A stretch of 64,000 bases of DNA, taken from positions 13,082,001 to 13,146,000 of the forward strand of contig CM075982.1 in NCBI GenBank assembly GCA_038087875.1, given 5' to 3'. Shown here piece by piece: positions 18,790-64,000 of this stretch. The notes under the pieces were generated by a model, which was not told the DNA's origin, searched no databases, and saw only the letters and a list, made by a program, of their open reading frames with translations. The stretch is from Malacoraja senta. Its lineage: Eukaryota. A program made the position numbers and the translations under genes. Each line of letters starts with the position of its first letter. The first letter of the stretch is position 1.

Positions 18790-19712
18790 CAATAGGCAAT
18801 AAACAATAGGTGCAGGAGTAGGCCATGCGGCCCTTCAAGCCAGCACTGCCATTGAATGTGATCATGGCTGATCATCCACAATCAGTACCCCATTCCTGCC
18901 TTCTCTCCATATCGCCTGACTCCACTATCTTCAAGAGCCCTATCTAGCTCTCTCTTGGAAGTTTCCAGAGAACCAGCCTCCACTGCTGTCTGAGGCAGAG
19001 CATTCCACACTCACAACTCTCTGTGTGAAAAAGTGTTTCCTCATCTCCATTCTAAATGGCTTACCCCTTATTCTTAAACTGTGGCCCCTGGTTCTGGACT
19101 CCCCCAACATCGGGAACATGTTTCCTGCCTCTAGTGTGTCCAAACCCTTAATAATCTTATATGTTTCAATAAGATCCAATCTCATCCTTCTAAAATCCAG
19201 AGTATACAAGCCCAGCCGCTCCATTCTCTCAGCATATGACAGTCCCGCCATCCCGGGAATTAACCTTGTGTACCTATGCTGCACTCCCTCAATAGCAAGA
19301 ATGTCCTTCCTCAAATTTGGAGAACAAAACTGCACACAATACTCCAGGTGTGGTCTCACTAGGGCCCTGTACAACTGCAGAAGGACCTCTTTGCTCCTAT
19401 ACTCAACTCCTCATGTTATGAAGGCCAACATGCCATTTGCTTTCTTCACTGCCTGCTGTACCTGCATGCTTACTTTCATTGACTGATGAACAAGGACCCC
19501 CAGATCCCGTTGTACTTCCCCTTTTCCCAACTTTACACCATTTAGATAATAATCTTCCTTCCTATTTTTGCTACCGAAGTGGATAACCTCACATTTATCC
19601 ACATTAAACTGCATCCGCCATGCATCTGCCCACTCACCCAACGTGTCCAAGTCACCCTGCATTCTCATAGCATCCTCCTCACAGTTCACACCGCCACGCA
19701 GCTTTGTGTCAT
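18790..19712 (-). mobile_element. 5'-truncated CR1 LINE
   Basis: Minus-strand ORFs 19411-19689 (WADAWRMQFNVDKCEV) and 18940-19374 (YRALVRPHLEYCVQF); 8-bp repeat tail (caatagg/caataaa on the plus strand). Confidence 0.93.
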
Positions 19713-28944: not shown

Positions 28945-29650
28945 CAAGCTTCTGGTTACTCGTCATTTAAATTCTCCTTCCCACTCCCACACTGACCTGA
29001 CTGTGCTCAGCCTTCTCCATTGCTGCTAACATACATTGGAAAGGTGACACATCATATTTCCACTTGCGTAGCTTAAACCCCAATGGTAGAATGCTTACAT
29101 ATGTCGGGGTTGCTGCAGAATGAGCGGTCTGAAGAAGGGTCATGACCTGAAACGTCACCCATTCCTTCTCTCCAGAGATGCTGCCTGTACCGCTGAGTAA
29201 CTCCAGCTTTTTGTGCCTATCTTTGGTTACATCAAACCGGTATGAACATCAAACATTGAATTTTCCAGTATCAGGTAACTCACCCCTTCAGTGCTCTCCT
29301 CCGATAAACACTCATCTATCCACCATCTTCTCCCTTTGTTCATCCCTTCCACCCCTTCTCCTCACCTGATTTCATCTTCCAGCATCCTCTTCCCAACTGC
29401 CTCCACCTACCCCTCTCTGTCCCACCCAACCTCCCCAGCTGGTCCCACCTGCCGCTCATCCCCCTCACAGCCCTCATTTGGTTCCACCTATTACCTCCCA
29501 GCCTCTGTCCCACCACCATTTGTGGTGCTATACACTGGCGATCTATCCTGTTCCCTCTCAGTCCTAAAGCAGGGTCTCGACCCAAAGCCTCAACTTCTAG
29601 ATTTTACTTTCACAGATGCCAATTGAGCCGTTGAGTTCTTCCAGTTCCAT
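28945..29650 (+). mobile_element. Decayed Penelope-like 3' end with nested younger hammerhead-bearing unit (about 29126-29230)
   Basis: HLNSPSHSHTDLTVLSLLHC matches the GIY-YIG C-terminus at 58803-59050; motif ctgaagaagggtcatgacctgaaacgtc at 29129-29156. Confidence 0.75.
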
Positions 29651-33893: not shown

Positions 33894-34830
33894 ATGAGGG
33901 CCAGGGCAGTTTACTGTTCTGGATGTCAGATGTGGGAGGTCATGGAATCTGATACCCCTCCAGACGTCCACATCTGTGCCAGGTGCGTCGAGATGGGGTT
34001 CCTAAGGGACCGTGTTAGGAACCTGGAGCAGCAGCTCGATGACCTCTGTCTGATCAGGGAGAGTGAGGAGGTCATAGAAAGGAGTTATAGGGAGGTGGCC
34101 ACTCCAAGACCACGGGAGGCAGAAAACTGGGTCACGGTTAGGAAGGGCAAGGGGCAGAGGCAGGGACTAGTGAGTACCCCGGTGGCTGTACACCTTGAAA
34201 ATAAGTACTCCTGTTTGAGTACTGTTGGGGGGGGACAGCCTTCCTGGGGGTAGCGACAGCAGGCGGGCCTCCGGCACAGAGACCGGCCCTATTGCTCAGA
34301 AGGGTAGGGAAAAGAAGAGGAGGGCAGTAGTAATAGGGGACTCTATGATTAGGGGGTTGGATAGGCGATTCTGTGGACGCAGTCAGGAGACCCGGATGGT
34401 AGTTTGCCTCCCTGGTGCCAGGGTCAGGGATGTGTCTGAACGCGTCCAAGATATCCTGAAATCGGAGGGAGTGGAGCCTGAGGTTGTGGTACATATAGGT
34501 ACCAATGACATAGGCAGAAAAAGAGAAGAGGTCCTGAAAGGAGAATTTAGGGAGTTGGGAGGAGAGTTAAGGAGAAGGACCGCAAAGGTAACAATCTCAG
34601 GATTACTACCTGTGCCACGCGACAGTGAGAGTAGGAATGGAATGAGGTGGAGGATAAATGTGTGGCTGAGCAACTGGTGCAGCAGGCAGGGATTCAAATT
34701 TCTGGATCATTGGGACCTCTTTTGGGGAAGGTGTGACCTGTACAGAAAGGACGGGTTGCACTTGAACCCGAGGGGGACCAATATTCTGGCGGGGAGATTT
34801 GCAAAGGCTACTGGGAAGACTTTAAACTAG
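33894..34830 (+). pseudogene. CR1 ORF1: zinc finger/coiled coil plus SGNH-type esterase, one frameshift
   Basis: CSGC...CARC followed by a heptad helix (33894-34253); GDS, PGA, GTND and DGLH blocks (34225-34830); frame change at the G8 run 34227-34234. Confidence 0.88.
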
Positions 34831-34835
34831 AACGG

Positions 34836-37765
34836 TTGGGGGGAGGGACTCAAATAGAGAAAGCTAGTAGAAAATGTGGGAGGCAGGAGGCAGAGAAGGG
34901 AAGTACTCGGACCCAAAATGTAGGGGAGAAAGAAGAAAAAGATAATAAACAGAGAATAAGTGGTGGTGGGTTTCTTAAATGTGTATATTTTAATGCTAGG
35001 AGCATTGTAAGAAAGGTGGATGAGCTTAGAGCCTGGATTAACACCTGGAAGTATGATGTTGTGGCGATCAGTGAAACATGGTTGCAGGAGGGCTGTGATT
35101 GGAAACTAAATATTCCAGGATTTCGTTGCTTCAGGGGTGATAGAATTGGAGGGGCAAGAGGTGGGGGTGTTGCATTGCTTGTCAAGGAAGATATTACAGC
35201 AGTGCTTTGGCAGGATATATTAGAGGGCTTGTCTAGGGAGGCTATTTGGGTGGAACTGAGAAATGGGAAAGGTGTAGCAACACTTCTTATAGACCGCCAA
35301 ATGGGGAGCGAGAATTGGAAGAGCAAATATGTAAGGAGATAGCAGATATTAGTAGTAAGCACAAGGTAGTGATTGTGGGAGATTTCAATTTTCCACACAT
35401 AGACTGGGAAACACATTCTGTAAAAGGGCTGGATGGTTTGGAGTTTGTAAAATGTGTGCAGGATAGTTTTTTGCAGCAATACATAGAGGTACCTACTAGA
35501 GAAGGGGCAGTGCTGGACCTCCTGTTAGGAAATGAGACAGGGCAGCTGGCGGAGGTATGCGTTGGGGAGCACTTCGGGTCCAGTGATCACAATACCATTA
35601 GTTTCAATATAATTATGGAGAGGGTCAGAACTGGACCTAGGGTTGAGATTTTTGATTGGAGAAAGGCTAACTTTGAGTAGATGCGAAAGGATTTAAAAGG
35701 AGTGAATTGGGATGTTGTTTTATGGGAAGGATGTAGAAGAGAAATGGAGGACATTTAAAGGTGAAATTTTAAGAGTACAGAATCTTTATGTCCCTGTTCG
35801 GTTGAAAGGAAATAGTAAAAATTGGAAAGAGCCATGGTTTTCAAGGTAAATTGGACACGGTTCAGAAAAAGAGAGAGATCTACAATAATTATAGGCAGCA
35901 TGGAGTAAATGAGGTGCTTGAGGAGTATAAAGAATGTTAAAAGAATATTAAGAAAGAAATTAGAAAAGCTAAAAGAAGATATGAGGTTGCTTTGGCAAGT
36001 AAGGTGAAAGTAAATCCAAAGGGTTTCTGCAGCTATATTAATAGCAAAAGGATAACAAGGAATAAAATTGGTCCATTAGAGAGTCAGAGTGGACAGATAT
36101 CTGCAGAGCCAAAAGAGATGGGGGAGATATTGAACAATTTCTTTTCTTCGGTATTCACCAAGGAGAAGGATATGGAATTATGTGAGGTAAGGGAAACAAG
36201 CAGAGTGGCAATGGAAACTATGAGATTCAAAGAAGAGGAGGTGCGGACACTTTTGAAAAATATGAAAACGGATAAGTCTCCAGGTCATGACAGGATATTC
36301 CCTAGGACATTGAGGGAAGTTAGTGTAGAAATAGCAGGGGCTATGACAGAAATATTTCAAATGTCATTAGAAACGGGTATAGTGCCGGAGGATTGGCGTA
36401 CTGCGCATGTTGTTCCGTTGTTTAAAGAGGGTTCTAAGAGTAAACCTAGCAATTATAGACCTGTTTGTTTGACGTCAGTGGTGGGCAAATTAATGGAAAG
36501 GATACTTAAAGATAATATATATAAGCATCTGGATAAGCAGGGTCTGATTAGGAACAGTCAACATGGATTTGTGCCTGGAAGGTCATGTTTGACTAATCTT
36601 CTTGAATTTTTCGAAGAGGTTACTAGGGAAATTGATGAGGGTAAAGCAGTGGATGTTGTCTATATGGACTTCAGTAAGGCCTTTGACAAGGTTCCGCATG
36701 GAAAGTTGGTTAAGAAGATTCAATTGTTGGTTATTAATGGTGGAGTAGCAAGATGGATTCAACAGTGGCTGAATGGGAGATGCCAGAGAGTAATGGTGGA
36801 TGGCTGTTTGTCAGGTTGGAGGCCGGTGACTAGTGGGGTGCCTCAGGGGTCTGTGTTGGGTCCACTGTTGTTTGTCATGTACATCAATGATCTGGATGAT
36901 GGTGTGGAAAATTGGATTAGTAAGTATGCAGATGATACTAAGATAGGTGGTGTTGTGAATAATGAAGTAGATTTTCAAAGTCTACAGAGAGATTTAGGCC
37001 ATTTGGAAGAGTGGGCTGAAAGATGGCAGATGGAGTTTAATGCTGATAAATGTGAGGTGCTACATCTCGGCAGGACAAATCAAAATAGGACGTACATGGT
37101 AAATGGTAGCGAATTGAGGAATGCAGTTGAACAGAGGGATCTAGGAATAACTGCATAGTTCCCTGAAGGTGGAATCTCATGTAGATAGGGTGGTAAAGAA
37201 AGCTTTTGGTGTGCTGGCCTTTATAAATCAGAGCATTGAATATAGAAGTTGGGATGCAATGTTAAAATTGTACAAGGCATTGGTGAGGCCAATTCTGGAG
37301 TGTGGAGTACAATTTTGGTCGTCTAATTATAGGAAGGATGTCAACAAAATAGAGAGAGTACAGAGGAGATTTACTAGAATGTTGCCTGGGTTTCAGCAAC
37401 TAAGTTACAGAGAAAGGTTGAACAAGTTAGGTCTTTATTCTTTGGAGCGCAGAAGGATAAGAGGGGACTTGATAGAGGTCTTTAAAATTATGAGCGGGTT
37501 AGACAGAGTTGACGTGGATAAGCTTTTCCCATTGAGAGTAGGGAAGATTCAAACAAGGGGACATGACTTGAGAATTAAGGGCCAGAAGCTTAGGGGTAAC
37601 ATTAGGGGGAACTTCTTTACTCAGAGAGTGGTAGCTGTATGGAATGAGCTTCCAGTGGAAGTGGTGGAGGCAGGTTCGATTTTATCCTTTAAAAATAGAT
37701 TGGATGGGTATATGGACGGGAAAGGAATGGAGGGTTATGGTCTGAGTGCAGGTAGATGGGACTAG
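34836..37765 (+). pseudogene. CR1 ORF2: apurinic-type endonuclease plus reverse transcriptase, with frameshifts and stops
   Basis: APE motifs (NARS, ISETWL, GGGVALLV, YRPP, GDFN, LDLLL, SDH); RT motifs (NYRPV, DFSKAFD, GVPQGSVLGP, YADD); broken into ORFs starting at 34836, 35246, 35992 and 37169, with a stop at 35678-35680. Confidence 0.93.
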
Positions 37766-38325: not shown

Positions 38326-39694
38326 TCACAAATATGGGACACAGTTACAAGATAAGGGTCTGATCATTTAAATCTAAGTTGCATTTAAATATCTGTGTTC
38401 CGAGTGTGGTGGATCTCTGGAGTTCTCTGCCCCTCGTGGCTGATGGAGGCCAGATCACTAGATATTATTTAGTTGGAGATAGATAAATTGAGGAATTGAG
38501 GGATGAGGAATTGACACTGAAGAGGAGTTAAGGTCAGCATTGTTCCGTCATGATCATATTGAATGGTGGGGCCGACTTGAGGGACCCGGTGACTTACTCC
38601 TGGTGGCGTAGACTCGATGGGCCGAATGGCCTCGTTCATCTCCAATGATATGAACTCCTGCTCCTATTGCTTTCTGTTCTTGTGTTATCTTGAAAGAACA
38701 CTGACTCGTGGATTTCCAGCACTTCCACAGCTGCTGCTGTTTGCTTGGAAAAATGGAGAAAGTAGATCGGAAATTCTGAATTTTTTCATCTACATTAACC
38801 TCCTGTAGTGCAACAATTTATTCTTGTAACTGCTACAAACTTGCAGTGCACTGACTCAATCTAAAACAGCGGGAACTTGGAACACAGAGGCAACATAAGG
38901 GAAACTGGTTTCAAAGCTGCCAGTGAGAAACTGCCAAGGAATGGACAGTCAGAAATGGCCCTGTCTCACGGTGCGAGTCCACCCACGAGTGATCCCGAGT
39001 GAAAGAAAAAATCAAACTCATGGTTGTCTACGAGATTCCAAGTTTATGTTCACGAGTTTAAACGAGTTCCCACGTGTATGTCTACGTTTGCCATTTACTT
39101 GTCATTTCTGCGATGTACCAAGTTCCTCTCCCGAGTTACCAGGTTCCTCTCCCGAGTTACTCTTGAGCCAACAACGACTACCGACGTGTGGAAAAATCAT
39201 CACATGGATAAAAATGTCATGCAGTTTTTTAAAACTATAAAAAGCCTCCCTTGACCATGGACAGAACTGCCCCGATGATCAGTTTCTCCGTGTCTCTTAT
39301 GTAGCTGCATGCTTCTCTTGTCATGTAATTAACCGCTTTTATCAAATCCTTGCCTATCATTGCTACAATGCAATAAATGGCATTTAAAGTACTTGGCTGT
39401 CAAAGAAAGCGCAAAACGTAAAGGTGATTAAGAAACGTACTGCAGGGAGAACTTCAAAGATTTTGTAAATGGATAGAAGTTGAACTCATGATTGAAATCC
39501 CCTGAAAGTTAGGTTTCTTAACACAGGATAGATGTTCTGCAAGAACGGAGTTGCTGAATAAAATCGTCTCCCGATTTCTTCCGTTTCTTGCATGACCTCG
39601 GCTTGCCAGCTTTATTTCACACTCCGTGATCTGTGTAATGTATATAAGTGTCAAATAATAAACTGACCAAGAAGGTCCAGTGTTCTCCCCTGTT

Positions 39695-39991
39695 AGTTTA
39701 GTTTAGAGATACAGAGCGGAAACAGGCCCTTCGAACCACCGAGTCCGCGCCGACCAGCGATCCCCGCACACTAACACCATCCTACACCCACTATGGACAT
39801 TTTTACATTCACCAAGCCAATTAACCTACAAACCTGTACGTCTTTGGAGTGTGGGGGGATCTCGGAGAAAACCCACGCAGGTCACGGGGAGAACTTACAA
39901 ACTCAGTACAGACAGCACCCGTAGTCGGGATCGAACCTGGGTCTCCGACGCTGCATTCGCTATCAAGCAGCTGCACCACCGTGAATGAAGG
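39695..39991 (-). mobile_element. V-SINE
   Basis: Full reverse-complement SINE with (TTTAG)n tail on the plus strand; possible CCTGTT TSD at 39689-39694 and 39992-39997. Confidence 0.88.
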
Positions 39992-40011
39992 CCTGTTTTA
40001 AGTATCAAATA

Positions 40012-40599
40012 GAGGAGCAAGAGGGTGATCAAGGCGGAGAAAGTGCAGAGGCCAATGCCCAGGTAGTCCAACTCGCAGGAGTGCAGGTCCACCATGACGA
40101 CGCAGTGCCCGCGGTGGGCTTTGAGGGAGGTGCAGGTGACATTGGTGACCAGGTGAGAGATGTAGACCGTGGTCTGATTGATCCACCACACGAACCACCT
40201 GGCGTCGCAGGTGCAGAGAAAGTGGTTGCCGCTTAGCCGCAGCTCCCGAAGGTGTTTGATGGCGCTGTCCGGGAAACTGGAGGCCTGGATGGTCTTCAGG
40301 TTGTTGTAGCTGAGATCATGGTACTGCAGGGAGGTCACGTCCCGCAGGAAGTTCTTGGTCAGCTTGGAGATCTGGTTGCGGGTGAGGTTGAAGACTAGCA
40401 GCGTCTGGGTGCAGTTGGACAGCATACGAGTCACCGTGGTCAACAGGTTGCTACCGAGGTCCAGCAGCTCCAACCAGCCTAGCAGGTAAAGCCTGCCCCA
40501 GTTGAAGCTCCGCAGCTGGTTACCGCTCAGCACAAGCTCCTTGAGTAGCGGGGCCAGGTGGTCAAACACATCGTGCGGCATGAACGCGAGTTTCTTCCC
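40012..40599 (-). pseudogene. TLR7: Toll-like receptor 7 fragment (C-terminal LRRs, LRRCT, transmembrane helix); no N-terminus, no TIR domain
   Basis: 196 stop-free codons: LELLDLGSNLLTTV..LSNC, NQISKLTKNFLRD, SFPD, GNHFLCTCDARWFVWWINQT, VTC..AHRG, DLHSCELD and a hydrophobic TM. By recall, colinear with vertebrate TLR7 (LETLDLSHNQLTTV..LSNC, NRFLCTCDAVWFVWWVNHT, DLYTCELD). In-frame TAG immediately upstream; the ORF (39895-40581) runs out into a SINE. Confidence 0.85.
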
Positions 40600-40670
40600 C
40601 TAATAATCCGCTGCTATCTGTGTTCGAGAGTGAAAACTTGCAAAGGGCATGCACGGTTCCTCGCCAGCGA

Positions 40671-40896
40671 AGATGAACACAGAATGCTGGAGTAACTCAG
40701 CGGGACAGGCAGCATCTCTGGAGAGAAGGAATGGGTGACGTTTCGGGTCGAGACCCATTACTTCTCTCCTGAGATACGGCAACAGCACAGCACAAAACCA
40801 GTCTGAAGAAGGGTCTCGACCCGAAACGTCACCAATTCCTTTTCTCCAGAGATGCTGTCTGCCCCGCTGAGTTACTCCAGCATTTTGTGTCTATCT
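40671..40896. mobile_element. Palindromic Penelope-derived element
   Basis: Inverted arms at 40671-40756 and 40811-40896, around a 54-nt centre containing the start of a hammerhead core. Confidence 0.85.
40801..40833 (+). ncRNA. Minimal type I hammerhead ribozyme motif (Penelope-associated)
   Basis: GU-CUGAAGA-A-GGGUC(UC)GACCC-GAAACGUC-AC: conserved core, stem II hairpin and palindromic ACGU stem III; predicted cleavage after C40830. Activity untested. Confidence 0.65.
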
Positions 40897-42874
40897 CCCA
40901 TGGCTTATAATGTCACCACACATTGTAAAATCATTATCTGAAGAAATGTCTCCTCGCTGGCTCAAACACAATCTATGTAGAACTCACGTTTCTCTCTGCT
41001 TCATATATGTGGGAATTCCCTCAGTATGGTCACTTTTCACGCGTCCCGCATGGTGTTAACCCTTCCCATCAATGCTTGAGCCCCCATCTTCGCTCTGTAT
41101 TTTCAGCTTCATCGGCGGCTCTCTCCCATCGAAAGTATCCAAGTTAATTTCAGACTCCTATATCCATCCATCCATTCATTCATTTCCCATTAAGATCTGA
41201 CTAATCTTCAACATTTCACTTCTGGCACTCAGGCCAAACCCACGAGTTACTCACGAGCCACTACGGTAAACTCACGGGCTACTGCGGTATTACAACGAGT
41301 TTAAAAGTTTCAAATTTTTCCTTCAAGAGTAAATTTGACTCGTGGAAATCTTTCAAAATGATGAAACATTTTCACGAGTTAACAAGTTTCCTGAGTACCT
41401 GCCGTTAGCGTTACGAGTCGCTAAGTTAAGTCCACGAGTTCCGACGTTCCCGCTAGGTTAATTCTACGTGGTTACCATGAGTTTGATTTGTTTTTAACGG
41501 GCTCACTCGTGGGTGTACTCGCACCGTGAGATAGGGGTTTTAGGAACTTCACTGAAACACATCTCAGTGACTTAAAAAAAAAGGATAACAGCAACAAAAT
41601 CACACATTTCAAAATAACACTCAAAGCTATCAATTAAAGTATCCTTTGTGCATTAATAGATTCATTAAAGTTTCTATTTCAATGCCTCAGGCTAGCCTGG
41701 AATTCACAGCCTCCACTGATTATTTTTCTCAACAGCGATCAAAGTTACAAATAATGGATTATGAGCCGCTACATTTTAATTTGTTTCTCCGTATTGTATA
41801 TACCTAACAAATGCTCTCATGGCTTTGAGCGATTGGCTTTTTTCTCTCTGTTACTGTCCATCCATCCCCCTCCTTGCATCTGATGCTGACTGCAGCTGCA
41901 TACACCCATTGATATTGAGAGAGGTTTGAGACGGCAAAAGAGCTGAGAGCTGCTTAATGGCTTTATGAAGCAACCAAGAAATCTGCAATAACACTACGCC
42001 AGCAATTCTGACAGTATAAAGAATTAGTTATCGCCACTCTTGGATGCTTAATTACTTTTTTTATTGGTTGCTTTTATGCCCTCATGCCTGATAACACTGG
42101 AACTGGTAAACAGCCCACAAGCAGATGAAGCACCAAATTAACTGATCAAAAGCATCTGCTAATGTGGCCAGCTGATGGTGAGGAATTGTACAATCGAGAT
42201 TTGAATGCGGGTTGGTGCACGGTGGGGTTAGGGGTGGGGTGAGTCCGTCGTTTGTGCAGAAGGATGGATTACAGCAGGGGATGAATGTTAGTGCATCCAG
42301 AAACCAGTTGCAATGTTCCAACTCCTAGGTTTGACTCGACCGCCTATAGCTGTTGGATCGTATCTGCTCCGAAGAGCTAGATTAACACTGAGTAGTTGCC
42401 TGAAGTTTCCATCTTTAAATTAAGGATAAATTATTATTTTAGAAACAAAACAAATGTTATAAATACATCAGGTCAGATATAAATCATATTTCCTCTTGCC
42501 ATAGAATGTGGGCTTTCAACTCATGGAGTTTACATTAGCACTCAAAATGATCCCATCAATTCCATTTCCCCACTCACCTCATACAATATAGATCGTGGAA
42601 AAGTAAAGCATAGGAACGGGCCCTTCAGCCCACAATTCCCGTGCCAAACATGATGCCAGGTTAAGTGAATCTCTTCTCCTTGCACGTGATCCATATACCT
42701 CATTCCCCGTATATCCATATGCCTATCTAAAAGCCTCTGAAATGCCACTATCATATCTGACTCCACCACCACCCCTGGTAATGCATTCCAGGCACCCACC
42801 ACTCTCTGTAATAAAATTTGCCCAGCTCATTTCCTTTAAAAAATCCTCCATTCACCTTAAAGCTATGCCCTCTA

Positions 42875-43406: not shown

Positions 43407-43579
43407 CTCTAGTCTTTGACATTTCACCCTGTGGGGAAAAGGTTCTGACTGTCAACCCTACCTAGGCCTCTTATAATTGTATATGCTTTTATAGGCCTCC
43501 CTTCAGCCTCCACACTCCAGAGAAAACAATCCAACCTCTCCCTATAGCTAATACCCCAAATCCAGTAGCATTCTGGTAA

Positions 43580-43711
43580 GTCTGAAGAAGGGTCTTGACC
43601 CGAAACATCACCAATTCCTTCTCTCCAGAGATGCTGCATGTCCCATTGAGTTAATCCAGCATTTGGTGTATACCTTCGATTTAAACCAGCATCTGCAGTT
43701 CTTTCCTAAGT
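43580..43711 (+). mobile_element. 132-bp hammerhead-headed Penelope-derived insertion
   Basis: Starts gtctgaagaagggtcttgacccgaaacatc; 10-bp TSD ATTCTGGTAA at 43570-43579 and 43712-43721. Confidence 0.88.
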
Positions 43712-48017: not shown

Positions 48018-48289
48018 AGATAGACACAAAAAGCTGTAGTAACTCAGCGAGTTAGACAGCATCTCTGGAGAAAAGGAATAGGTGACATTTCGGGTTGAGA
48101 CCCTTCTTTAGACTGAAGAATAGGTGACATTTTGGGTCGAGACCCTTCTTCAGACTGAAGAAGGGTTTCGACCCGAAACATCACCTATTCCTTTTCTCCA
48201 GAGATGCTGCCTGACCCGCTGAGTTACTCCAGCTTTTTGTGTTTACCTTTGGTTTAAACCAGATTCTGCAGTTTCTTCCTACACATTCA
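48018..48289. mobile_element. Palindromic Penelope-derived element with a tandem-duplicated hammerhead unit
   Basis: Inverted arms centred on 48154; 42-bp tandem duplication at 48076-48117 and 48118-48159; imperfect TSD GAATTAA(T/C)CTT at 48007-48017 and 48290-48300. Confidence 0.85.
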
Positions 48290-49751: not shown

Positions 49752-49785
49752 GGTCTGAAGAAGGGTCTCGACCCGAAACGTCACC
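49752..49785 (+). ncRNA. Minimal type I hammerhead ribozyme motif
   Basis: GGU-CUGAAGA-A-GGGUC(UC)GACCC-GAAACGUC-ACC; stem I GGU/ACC; predicted cleavage after C49782. Confidence 0.65.
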
Positions 49786-49847
49786 CATTCCTTCTCTCCA
49801 GAGATGCTGCCTGTCCCGCTGAGTTACTCCAGCTTTTTATGTCTATT
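49755..49847 (+). mobile_element. Short hammerhead-headed Penelope-derived insertion
   Basis: Starts at CTGAAGA; possible CCTGGT TSD at 49749-49754 and 49848-49853. Confidence 0.75.
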
Positions 49848-54924: not shown

Positions 54925-55223
54925 ACGGGCTGTCCCACTGTACGAGCTAATTCAAGAGCTCTCCCGAGTTTTAAACAAATTTAAACTCGTGGTAAGTACG
55001 TAGAATGTACGTAGCGGCTACATCGGAGCTCGGGACGTCTCTTAGGAGCTCGTAACGCTAACGGCAGGTACTCGGGAAACGCGGTAAGCTCGTGAAAACA
55101 TGTTGAAAAATGTCCACGAGAGCCCCAAGTACCTACGAGCGGCTATTACCGTAGTTCTCCGAGTTCGAATCAGGGGAAACTCGGGAGAACTCTTGAATTA
55201 CCTCGTACAGTGGGACAGCCCCA
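54925..55223. mobile_element. PIF/Harbinger-type MITE inserted in an older palindromic element (about 54710-55320)
   Basis: TIR gggctgtcccactgtacgag.taattcaagag.tctcccgagttt and its inverse; TAA TSD at 54922-54924 and 55224-55226. Confidence 0.9.
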
Positions 55224-58591: not shown

Positions 58592-59717
58592 AAGGTACAC
58601 AAAAATGCTGGAGAAACTCAGCGGGTGCAGCAGCATCTATGGAGCGTAGGAAATAGGTAACGTTTCGGGCCGAAACCCTTCTTCAGACTGATAGGGGGTG
58701 GGGAGAAGAAAGGAAAAAAGGAAAAGGAGGAGGAGGAGCCCGAGGGTTGGGGGAGGGGAGGAGACAACCAGATGGCTGATGAAGGGGAGGGGACAGCCAG
58801 GGCTAGCAGAATTGGGAGAATTCAACGTTCAGGCCACCAGGGTGTAGACTGCCCAAGCGGAATATGAGGTGCATTTCCTCCAATTTACGGTGTTGCTCGC
58901 TGTGGCCATGGAGGAGACCCAGGACAGAGAGGTCAGATACGGAATGGGAGGGGGAGTTGAAGTGCTGAGCCACCGGGAGTTCAGGTTGGTTATTGCGGAC
59001 CGACCGGAGGTGTTCGGCGAAACGATCGCCAAGCCTCCGCTTGGTCTCACCGATGTAGATCAGCTGGCATCTAGAGCAGCGAATGCAATAGATGAGGTTG
59101 GAGGAGATGGAGGTGAACCTCTGTCGCACCTGGAACGACTGCTTGGGTCCTGGAATGGAGTGGAGGGGGGAAGTGAAGGGACAAGTGTTGCATCTCTTGC
59201 GGTTGCAAGGGAAAGTACCAGGGGAGGGGGTGGTATGGGAGGGAAGGGAAGAATTGACAAGGGAGTTACGGAGGGAGCGGTCTTTGCGGAAGGCAGACAT
59301 AGGGGGAGATGGGAAGATGTGGCGAGTGGTGGGGTCACGTTGGAGGTGGCGAAACTGACGGAGGATCACTTGTTGTATGTGACGGCTGGTGGGGTGAAAG
59401 GTGAGGACTAGGGGGACTCTGCCTTTGTTGTGAGTGGGGGGATGGGGAGAGAGAGCAGTGTTGCGGGGTATGGCAGAGACCCTGGTGCGAGCCTCATCTA
59501 TGGTGGAGGAGGGGAACCCCCGTTCCCTGAAGAATGAGGACATTTCAGATGCCCTGGTGTGGAACGCCTCATCCTGGGAGCAGATGCGGCGTAGACGGAG
59601 GAATTGGGAGTGGGGGATGGAGTCCTTACAGGAAGCAGGGTGGGAAGAAGTGTAGTCCAGATAGCCATGGGAGTCGGTAGGTTTGTAGTGGATGTCGGTA
59701 AGGAGTCTATCACCTGC
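58592..59717 (-). mobile_element. 5'-truncated Penelope-like retroelement (RT thumb plus GIY-YIG endonuclease)
   Basis: ORF 58803-59543 (open further upstream): PLVLTFHP, CNRKRCNTC linker, NLIYCIRCSRCQLIYIGET-RRLGDRFAEH, E..LIFRLGSLHPGGLN; 11-bp TSD GAAGGCACTGG at 58581-58591 and 59718-59728. Confidence 0.95.
58656..58688 (-). ncRNA. Minimal hammerhead motif in the Penelope 3' terminal repeat
   Basis: GU-CUGAAGA-A-GGGUU(UC)GGCCC-GAAACGUU-ACC; stem II is retained through G-U pairs. Confidence 0.65.
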
Positions 59718-61845: not shown

Positions 61846-62045
61846 NNNNNNNNNNNNNNNNNNNNNNNNNNNNNNNNNNNNNNNNNNNNNNNNNNNNNNN
61901 NNNNNNNNNNNNNNNNNNNNNNNNNNNNNNNNNNNNNNNNNNNNNNNNNNNNNNNNNNNNNNNNNNNNNNNNNNNNNNNNNNNNNNNNNNNNNNNNNNNN
62001 NNNNNNNNNNNNNNNNNNNNNNNNNNNNNNNNNNNNNNNNNNNNN
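61846..62045. other. Assembly gap (200 N)
   Basis: Run of N. Confidence 1.
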
Positions 62046-64000
62046 TCAGTTGTTCGTGAACAAAAAGAGAAGTATGCCCATATTATGGTTTTAAAATCAT
62101 ATTGGTAGTTGGAAGAAGAGTAAAACTCAGGTAGGTGAGTAGCTGAGGGGTGATATTATAGAGGTGTATAAACTCATTAGGGGGAATAGATCGGCTGAAG
62201 GCACAGAGTCTTTCCCCCAGGATAGGATAATCAAAAACTAGAGGACACAGGTTTAATGTGAGAGGAAAAACATTTAATGGGAACCCGAGGGGCAATATTT
62301 CACAGAAGATAGTAGGTAAATGAAACGAGCTGCCAGAGGAAATAGTTGAGGCAGTTGCAGTTACAACATTTAAAAGCCATTTGGGAAGCTAGATGGATGG
62401 AGAAGATTTAGGGGGATCAGGTGCAAACATGGCAAAATGCGACTAGCGTAGATGGAGCAACTTGGTCACCATTGACGAGCTGGGCTCTAAGGCTTGTTTC
62501 CGTGCTGAATGACTCCATGACTTACAAAGCTTAAAAATAAACTTCAAACTTCCAGAAGAACTCAGCAGTGCATGCAGCATCGGTGGAGATGAATATTACA
62601 TTTGTATCACGTCTGCCTCCCTTCCTGGTTTGCTTTTAGCCACTTTTGCACGCTTGAGCTGACAATAGGCAATAAACAATAGGTGCAGGAGTAGGCCATG
62701 CGGCCCTTCAAGCCAGCACTGCCATTGAATGTGATCATGGCTGATCATCCACAATCAGTACCCCATTCCTGCCTTCTCTCCATATCGCCTGACTCCACTA
62801 TCTTCAAGAGCCCTATCTAGCTCTCTCTTGGAAGTTTCCAGAGAACCAGCCTCCACTGCTGTCTGAGGCAGAGCATTCCACACTCACAACTCTCTGTGTG
62901 AAAAAGTGTTTCCTCATCTCCATTCTAAATGGCTTACCCCTTATTCTTAAACTGTGGCCCCTGGTTCTGGACTCCCCCAACATCGGGAACATGTTTCCTG
63001 CCTCTAGTGTGTCCAAACCCTTAATAATCTTATATGTTTCAATAAGATCCAATCTCATCCTTCTAAAATCCAGAGTATACAAGCCCAGCCGCTCCATTCT
63101 CTCAGCATATGACAGTCCCGCCATCCCGGGAATTAACCTTGTGTACCTATGCTGCACTCCCTCAATAGCAAGAATGTCCTTCCTCAAATTTGGAGAACAA
63201 AACTGCACACAATACTCCAGGTGTGGTCTCACTAGGGCCCTGTACAACTGCAGAAGGACCTCTTTGCTCCTATACTCAACTCCTCATGTTATGAAGGCCA
63301 ACATGCCATTTGCTTTCTTCACTGCCTGCTGTACCTGCATGCTTACTTTCATTGACTGATGAACAAGGACCCCCAGATCCCGTTGTACTTCCCCTTTTCC
63401 CAACTTTACACCATTTAGATAATAATCTTCCTTCCTATTTTTGCTACCGAAGTGGATAACCTCACATTTATCCACATTAAACTGCATCCGCCATGCATCT
63501 GCCCACTCACCCAACGTGTCCAAGTCACCCTGCATTCTCATAGCATCCTCCTCACAGTTCACACCGCCACGCAGCTTTGTGTCATGAATGTAGCTGAATG
63601 TAGCTAAACTGCCTGCTGAATGTAGCTAAACCTGGAAAGAAACAAATGGTGCAAAGATTATTGATTTGTTTTTGATGTCATTACCTGAGGCCATAGCACC
63701 TCCTAGTCTGCACTTCTTGAAATGCTCCATCTTTCAGTAAATACAGTGGTTATTAATTCACATATATACACACACACACACACACAAAATGTCAAAATAA
63801 TTTCCATGTATTTATCAAAGTTGCAGTAATGAGACAGCTTGACAGCAGCGAGCATAGCCTGCTTAATGAGTCTGTGCTGAGTTAATATCAAAACTGATCA
63901 GAGCTGTACATGTTGCCATAGCTGCCTGGCTTGTTGATGAGTTGCAAAGCTTTAAACTGGAGGGTCAGTGTTGAAATGAGCAGTCGCGATTTTATGAATA
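62046..64000 (+). repeat. Near-identical copy of 18173-20127 (includes CR1 fragments)
   Basis: Constant offset of 43,873 bp; identical ORF translations; the only difference I noticed is T20114 vs C63987. Confidence 0.97.

Follow-up and report, generated by a model that had tools for sequence, protein, structure and literature searches.

Within the 64,000-nucleotide stretch of Malacoraja senta DNA analysed here (contig CM075982.1; hereafter the window), positions 38956-41539 are, judged from their sequence, one non-autonomous PIF/Harbinger-type DNA transposon that carries an internal piece of the toll-like receptor gene TLR7. A second full copy of the loaded element is found at an unrelated site in Leucoraja erinacea. 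The TLR7 piece probably formed the 5' part of a chimeric retrocopy that landed in an older Harbinger element, rather than being captured at the DNA level.

The element ends in inverted arms at 38959-39024 and 41474-41536 (66 bp, 88% identity), in line with a preliminary description of this DNA that had placed two inverted termini of about 65 bp at 38956 and 41539; the span of 2,584 bp follows from alignment with the second copy. The left terminal inverted repeat (38956-39024, plus strand) has the core motif CTRTCYCACNGTRCGAG in common with a TAA-flanked MITE at 54927-55221, and the right one (41474-41539, minus strand) is its inverted-arm match, with a terminus that is kept in the second copy. 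Across the window, exact matches to the 15-mer TCTCACGGTGCGAGT are confined to these two termini. Between them lie a left subterminal and internal backbone (39025-39678), with repeated ACGAG/CCGAG motifs, no long ORF and 95-96% identity to the second copy, and a right internal and subterminal backbone (40905-41473), the right part of which is homologous to the MITE. ORFs in the element reach at most about 105 amino acids once the TLR7-derived cargo frame is excepted, so the element has no transposase ORF of its own; an autonomous partner would be expected to share its termini and to encode a DDE transposase and a Myb-like protein.

Members of the Harbinger superfamily are recognised by target-site duplications of 3 bp together with terminal repeats of 25-50 bp (PMC2572040), and the target of PIF elements is TTA/TAA (PMC8903248). 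Here the 66-bp arms supply terminal inverted repeats of tens of base pairs, with termini conserved in the second copy, and the 3-bp TWA duplication is seen as TAA/TAA in both the L. erinacea copy and the related MITE. At the position expected for this duplication the window copy is degenerate, with AAA on the left (38953-38955) and TTA on the right (41540-41542), the same flanks that had been read before; each is one change away from TAA, and the L. erinacea equivalents are both TAA. Against the assignment, these mismatched flanks need two mutations in six sites, which is about 1% likely at a divergence of about 3% per copy, and the first bases of the left terminus differ between the window copy and the second copy. 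We also considered piggyBac, which makes a TTAA duplication, and rejected it because no copy has TTAA on both sides.

The MITE at 54927-55221 has perfect 20-bp terminal inverted repeats with TAA on both sides. The preliminary description had matched the right subterminal region of the element to a MITE near 54925 through a 25-mer, which we find exactly at 41393-41417 and 55049-55073; the homology extends beyond it, to 157 bp with 78% identity and, in a further alignment, to about 200 bp, with 41339-41493 of the element homologous to 54973-55120 of the MITE. Two TAA-flanked MITEs with similar termini had been described, of which this one was recovered and the second was absent from our motif search.

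The second copy lies in an intron of a calcium-channel gene of L. erinacea (CM054022.1, about 815,950-818,479; locus L001). Window positions 38951-41543 align to positions 11738-9200 of this locus over 2,627 columns, colinear from end to end. The L001 copy starts with AGCCCCTGTCTCA directly after one TAA and ends with TGAGATAGGGGTT directly before another, a perfect TAA/TAA target duplication. The TLR7 breakpoints, the SINE and the palindromic repeat have the identical arrangement in both copies, and backbone, SINE, filler, TLR7 piece and palindrome are each 94-96% alike. A palindromic repeat also flanks the L001 copy. A 249-residue NCBI protein of L. erinacea named 'toll-like receptor 7' (P0001) is the cargo of this copy and has the same non-TLR residues as the window copy on both sides of the TLR7 piece; it was the only short annotated protein resembling the cargo that the protein search returned.

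The same breakpoints, the termini-exact ends and the TAA/TAA duplication at the second locus together indicate that the loaded element transposed as one unit, evidently by cut-and-paste transposition with transposase supplied in trans. Since the composite is colinear and 94-96% alike in every segment, all of the cargo was aboard before the copies separated. The SINE and the palindromic insert, which had earlier been set apart from the TLR7 piece, are not later additions: they are present in both copies at backbone-level divergence. It is extremely improbable that two related MITEs inserted independently on either side of a TLR7 relic, with no single element; the mismatched AAA and TTA triplets had suggested this caveat, and it is refuted by a second locus where the identical arrangement spans both termini, next to TAA on each side and amid unrelated flanking sequence, and by the lack of TLR7 sequence beyond the termini. 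A segmental duplication in place of transposition fits the fact that only two copies are known, and is very improbable, as the match between the copies gives out within 4-5 bp at either terminus, a clean TAA duplication of 3 bp brackets the L001 copy, only scattered repeats align beyond the termini, and the joined window flanks find dispersed repeats only, leaving the two copies at non-homologous sites.

The cargo is a TLR7 coding fragment on the minus strand at 40013-40600. It aligns without gaps over 588 bp to Amblyraja radiata TLR7 at 93.5% DNA identity (84.6% for Rhinoraja TLR7), which bears out the earlier reading of a 588-bp piece from inside the TLR7 coding region; also as described before, there is no further TLR7 sequence in the window. 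The homology is unambiguous over 40013-40591, and the last 9 nt are shared with a direct repeat. The minus-strand frame at 40003-40599 matches human TLR7 residues 661-855 with an E value of 2.8e-56 (1e-25 for TLR8), and the cargo matches TLR7, not TLR8 or TLR9, with protein identities of 87% to Amblyraja, 77% to Rhinoraja and 62-65% to shark TLR7. It corresponds to codons 654-852 of skate TLR7, that is, LRR22-26, the LRR-CT and most of the transmembrane helix, and includes neither the signal peptide nor the TIR domain; in the window copy, a stop stands just upstream of the TLR7 homology. The GC content of the cargo is 57-60%, versus about 40-45% in its surroundings. A representative search gave no close TLR7, and skate TLR7 was reached via coelacanth and then sevengill-shark TLR7; the matches of the TLR7 protein searches included no full-length L. 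erinacea TLR7. With the termini, the TAA/TAA duplication of the second copy and this 588-bp match, the proposal of a non-autonomous Harbinger carrying a TLR7 coding fragment stands.

Animal Pack-TIRs are DNA transposons with terminal inverted repeats that contain host gene fragments, and multicopy examples are known from frog, alligator and Drosophila (Tan et al. 2021, PMC8277862). The skate element resembles them in that a non-autonomous element with terminal inverted repeats brackets a GC-rich fragment of an identifiable parental gene and, so loaded, occurs with the same breakpoints at more than one locus, in the second case with a target duplication of its own. The preliminary description had proposed a search for such a structure elsewhere, and the L. 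erinacea copy, with its identical TLR7 breakpoints, is one; the fragment is hence not single-copy outside the true gene. The suggestion that it was possibly amplified is borne out for two copies only. Unlike the animal Pack-TIRs listed, the skate element is Harbinger-type, comes from a cartilaginous fish, has TLR7 as its cargo and is shown in two copies, and its cargo appears to have come in fused to a SINE, as a retrocopy that made a target duplication of its own, and not through DNA template switching.

The sequence adjoining the TLR7 piece bears on how it entered. Reading on the minus strand, the piece is followed by a 28-nt filler (39985-40012), for which no source was detected in the window or the TLR7 loci, and then by a full-length tRNA-derived SINE (39692-39984), whose head, TCACGGTGG, starts at 39984, a start position that independent copies share, and whose (CTAAA)n-like tail ends at 39692. 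Directly 3' of this tail is the first copy of a direct repeat (AGGGGAGAACACT on the minus strand, 39679-39691), a putative target-site duplication of a retro-insert that is kept in the second element copy; the other repeat copy (AGGGGAAGAAACT on the minus strand, 40589-40601) stands at the 5' end of the TLR7 piece, and its last 3 nt (ACT) overlap the TLR7 homology as microhomology. On the far side is a palindromic high-copy repeat (40663-40904) with 94-nt arms that are 89% complementary, present in both element copies; it and the SINE are both high-copy within the window. Rfam gave no hammerhead and no tRNA-like match on the element at E<=0.01, with only a sub-threshold mir-734-like hairpin match on the palindrome, and neither SINE copy was called as a tRNA by ARAGORN.

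The 13-nt direct repeat, AGGGGA(A)GAA(C)ACT with two 1-nt gaps, brackets exactly the TLR7 piece, filler and SINE (p=0.0038). With alternative boundaries, around the SINE alone or the filler and SINE, there is no flanking repeat (p=0.78). The TLR7 piece and the SINE are co-oriented, with TLR7 lying 5' of the untruncated SINE head. Within the 9 nt at the TLR7 edge there are 3 differences from the real gene, and the rest of the inferred ancestral cargo is about 3% different from the Amblyraja gene; these 9 nt would fit target-site sequence rather than TLR7. Since TLR7 is encoded in one exon, an RNA intermediate would leave no trace in the form of intron loss. The co-orientation and the 13-nt repeat around the whole insert point to a LINE-mediated chimeric retrocopy. 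Both known copies of the backbone contain the insert, so the case for nested retroposition depends on this single 13-nt repeat and its two one-base gaps.

Such an insertion may have begun at a nick in the older Harbinger element, where a LINE reverse transcriptase used a SINE tail for priming and then copied this SINE as far as its 5' end. A template jump, or possibly two given the 28-nt filler, would then have moved the enzyme onto a TLR7 mRNA within the transmembrane-coding region, where 588 nt would have been copied before it stopped; alternatively, the template may have been a single TLR7-SINE read-through transcript. Joining of the cDNA at the 3-nt microhomology would have left the 13-nt target-site duplication around TLR7 piece, filler and SINE, and the loaded element was then copied to at least one other locus with TLR7 as passive cargo. 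LINE template jumps are documented as a source of chimeric retrocopies, some of them tripartite (PMC2104539). Like the tripartite pseudogene of Magnaporthe (PMC2104539) and the U6-L1 chimeras (PMC4476161), the skate insert joins RNA pieces head to tail in one orientation, with a truncated 5' part, a 3' retroposon tail that abuts the 3' repeat, and a target-site duplication around the whole that is found in both copies. Unlike them, it has a tRNA-SINE at its 3' end, an internal mRNA piece at its 5' end and a 28-nt filler between, and it became the cargo of a DNA transposon.

A classical Pack-TIR capture, in which TLR7 genomic DNA would have been taken up through template switches in the course of gap repair or of replication and the adjoining SINE would be unrelated, is the main competitor, and we regard it as rather unlikely; the models considered were gap-filling and FoSTeST, with the SINE inserting earlier or later and transposition following. 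Vertebrate Pack-TIRs, multicopy ones among them, are documented, and the multicopy ones favour GC-rich sequence (PMC8277862), as in this cargo. The fragment also derives from mid-exon coding sequence, with abrupt ends and no poly-A tail, and the filler and short microhomology fit template-switch repair as well. Template switching does not, however, predict a duplication of the acceptor on both sides of an insert, the 13-nt repeat brackets TLR7 and SINE jointly while the SINE alone has no flanking repeat, and chance would have to account for the co-orientation and for an intact SINE head right next to the cargo. Pack-MULE-style DNA capture, as first suggested, is accordingly disfavoured by the repeat around the head-to-tail pair, and the same repeat favours what had been a caveat, namely insertion of the TLR piece into a pre-existing element. 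The skate element does share with plant Pack-PIF, Pack-TYPE and Pack-MULE elements the TAA/TTA duplication, the terminal inverted repeats and the non-autonomous shuffling of coding DNA (PMC8903248), and differs from Pack-PIFs and Pack-MULEs in its vertebrate host, its single fragment and the lack of any clear sign of DNA-level capture. Turmoil-1 of C. elegans is likewise an animal Harbinger-superfamily element with host coding fragments; it is autonomous and bears transduplicated cargo in 760-bp terminal repeats, whereas the skate element is non-autonomous with internal cargo (PMC2572040).

The chimeric retrocopy that we prefer, like the other structural readings, would be compatible with a functional cargo, for instance a truncated LRR-CT/transmembrane TLR7 decoy protein or a locus that yields small RNAs directed at TLR7 mRNA. 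In each copy the reading frame has stayed open over about 200 codons, one copy has an NCBI gene model, and small-RNA effects like those of Pack-MULEs have been discussed for Pack-TIRs (PMC8277862). We nonetheless think a function improbable. The dN/dS between the two cargo copies is 0.81 (about 0.8-1.1), as compared with 0.30 between Amblyraja and Rhinoraja TLR7, and changes unique to one copy or the other fall evenly on the three codon positions (5/4/5 and 8/5/5). The probability that both frames stayed open by chance is about 0.39, and the upstream stop in the window copy and the missing signal peptide and TIR domain also speak against a function. By these measures the cargo evolves neutrally, and what the element evidently spreads is a TLR7 segment, truncated and lacking a promoter, for which no function is detectable.

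Many plant but few animal cases of DNA transposons that carry gene fragments are known, and in the literature searched we found no paper on such elements from cartilaginous fish. The skate element is a clean vertebrate case in which part of a host gene has been moved by a DNA transposon, of a kind already known from the animal Pack-TIRs. It suggests an under-appreciated route of capture, in which a SINE retrocopy brings in a gene fragment and a cut-and-paste element then disperses it, and this route bears on how Pack-type elements are counted and explained. Because the cargo is named as a TLR7 gene in the public L. erinacea annotation, it could inflate TLR counts in comparative immunology. As a long shot, skate Harbingers may routinely gain coding fragments by SINE/LINE chimeric retroposition and then amplify them, with TLR7 pieces feeding small-RNA or decoy regulation. 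If this were true, such routine uptake would amount to a two-step, RNA-then-DNA route of exon shuffling, and the regulated target would be the antiviral RNA sensor TLR7.

The TLR7-carrying transposon at 38956-41539 has transposed as one loaded unit. The only short annotated protein resembling its TLR7 fragment, P0001 ("toll-like receptor 7 [Leucoraja erinacea]", 249 aa), runs on both sides of its TLR7 part into non-TLR residues that match the window frame, and its locus, L001, lies on CM054022.1 within an intron of a voltage-gated calcium-channel gene. Window positions 38951-41543 align to L001 11738-9200 over 2,627 columns that take in the SINE, the TLR7 piece, and the palindromic repeat; beyond the termini, scattered repeats alone align. 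The L001 copy begins with AGCCCCTGTCTCA and ends with TGAGATAGGGGTT, directly flanked on each side by TAA, and a 3-bp TAA duplication is diagnostic of PIF/Harbinger elements (PMC2572040, PMC8903248). The preliminary description had suggested looking for TLR7 between the same termini at another TWA-flanked locus, and L001 is such a locus. Its colinearity from terminus to terminus, with TAA at both ends, refutes the earlier caveat that the two arms might be independent insertions. Segmental duplication is likewise rejected, given these flanks and the restriction of outside similarity to scattered repeats. In a global alignment, the two copies are 94-96% identical in the backbone, SINE, 28-nt filler, TLR7 piece, and palindrome, the exception being the right subterminal segment (86%, around a 31-bp deletion). 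This uniform identity and the colinear second copy imply that all passengers were aboard before the copies diverged and that the composite moved as a unit.

The termini themselves were recovered as arm pairs at 38959-39008/41487-41536 and 39003-39024/41474-41495 in an inverted-repeat search, together forming a 66-bp terminal inverted repeat (TIR) at 88%, which confirms the inverted termini first placed at 38956 and 41539. The 15-mer TCTCACGGTGCGAGT occurs at only two positions in the 64 kb, one per terminus. The right arm is homologous over ~200 bp to the left half of a Harbinger-type MITE (54927-55221, ~295 bp) whose 20-bp TIRs are perfect and which is flanked by TAA left and right, and the 25-mer previously reported as common to the arm and a MITE near 54925 is an exact match within this homology. 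Two related TAA-flanked MITEs had been claimed; a degenerate TIR motif search of the window matched only the TLR7-carrying element and the MITE at 54927-55221, and did not find the second. The flanks of the window copy are mismatched (AAA/TTA), as originally noted, and its first left-terminal bases are unlike those of the L001 copy, both of which we treat as local decay.

The minus strand at 40003-40599 is an open frame that aligns without gaps to residues 661-855 of human TLR7 (E 2.8e-56), with E values of about 1e-25 against TLR8 and about 1e-15 against TLR9. Pfam returned LRR repeats only; the piece runs from the last five LRRs through the LRR-CT cap and takes in most of the transmembrane helix, and the signal peptide and TIR domain are absent. 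Against skate TLR7 proteins reached by stepwise search, the fragment shows 87% identity to that of Amblyraja radiata (aa 654-852) and 77% to that of Rhinoraja; identity to shark TLR7 is 62-65%. At the DNA level, 40013-40600 aligns to the A. radiata gene over 588 bp with no gaps (93.5%), bearing out the proposed 588-bp coding piece, and to the Rhinoraja gene at 84.6%. A tblastn search of the window with full-length TLR7 found no match besides this piece, in agreement with the preliminary description, and the window is therefore not the TLR7 locus. The searches returned full-length TLR7 from Amblyraja and Rhinoraja and none from L. erinacea.

The dN/dS ratio between the two cargo copies is 0.81 (0.74 and 1.08 from their inferred ancestor), and that of the real TLR7 between Amblyraja and Rhinoraja is 0.30. 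Substitutions specific to one copy fall evenly on the three codon positions (5/4/5 and 8/5/5); on the lineage of the Amblyraja gene, third positions are favored (4/2/7). Because the simulated chance of both cargo frames staying open is 0.67 x 0.59, the intact frames are no evidence of function. The publicly annotated 249-aa "toll-like receptor 7" gene at L001:10001-10750 (L. erinacea CM054022.1, ~816,747-817,496) is transposon cargo and likely a misannotation, being a truncated, neutrally drifting passenger in a calcium-channel intron. Synonymous distances are about 0.03 from each copy to their common ancestor, 0.055 from that ancestor to Amblyraja TLR7, and 0.34 between Amblyraja and Rhinoraja TLR7, which places the capture among rajids, around the time that Amblyraja and Leucoraja parted or later.

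In the TLR7 sense, the interior reads backbone, AGGGGAAGAAACT, TLR7 (588 bp), filler, full-length tRNA-type SINE, AGGGGAGAACACT, and backbone. The SINE is untruncated, since independent copies in the window and at three other loci share one head start position, and the filler matches neither the SINE nor TLR7. The stretch immediately before the TLR7 piece and the 15 nt past the SINE tail match with a local score that 0.38% of random pairs attain; against what precedes the SINE by itself, or filler and SINE together, the latter flank scores at chance level (p=0.78). This direct repeat is kept in both element copies. A duplication around a co-oriented mRNA piece and SINE, with the tail 3', is the signature of LINE-mediated chimeric retroposition. 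Because the duplication here brackets just such a pair, we favor entry by LINE-mediated retroposition of a chimeric TLR7-SINE template, a moderately probable route for which the support is one short repeat. Nine bases at the TLR7 edge are better read as the insertion target sequence, joined to TLR7 through 3-nt microhomology, because they mismatch the real gene at three positions and take the place of a conserved LRR asparagine codon, whereas elsewhere only ~3% separates the inferred cargo ancestor from the Amblyraja gene. LINE template jumps, double ones among them, have been described (PMC2104539, PMC4476161). The main rival, Pack capture at the DNA level (PMC8277862), keeps some probability because the source region of TLR7 is a single exon, both known backbone copies carry the insert, and the retroposition argument depends on that single repeat, but the repeat encloses TLR7 and SINE together, and we consider DNA capture rather unlikely. 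The original proposal that a Harbinger captured a TLR7 fragment therefore holds for the loaded element, as the L001 copy attests, and is less favored as to a DNA-level step.

The window is rich in other repeats. The palindromic repeat is very abundant, occurring at 40663-40904 and at >20 other window sites (e.g., 48018-48249, 49753-49846, 29127-29223, and 43579-43678); Rfam at 40663-40904 gave only a sub-threshold mir-734-like hairpin match, with the hammerhead family absent at E<=0.01. A near-complete LINE lies directly upstream of the element (33894-37765), with ORFs, interrupted by frame changes, that resemble an endonuclease/reverse-transcriptase pair, including a 388-aa RT-like ORF at 35992-37158. 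Identical 144-aa and 153-aa ORFs (LINE 3' region) at both 18940-19486 and 62813-63359 suggest either that the repeat copies are very recent or that a segment of the assembly is duplicated; the latter locus is just beyond an N gap at 61846-62045. On the minus strand, 58803-59543 holds an ORF of 246 aa whose motifs, cysteine-rich and GIY-YIG-like, are typical of a Penelope-like element endonuclease.

Pack-TIRs, multicopy ones included, were found in 55 of 100 surveyed animal genomes (PMC8277862), Pack-PIF elements abound in maize and rice (PMC8903248), and C. elegans has a Harbinger that carries transduplicated coding sequence (PMC2572040). The loaded TLR7 element is a further case of this known type among animals, and its particular interest lies in the identity of its cargo and in the probable RNA-then-DNA route of capture.
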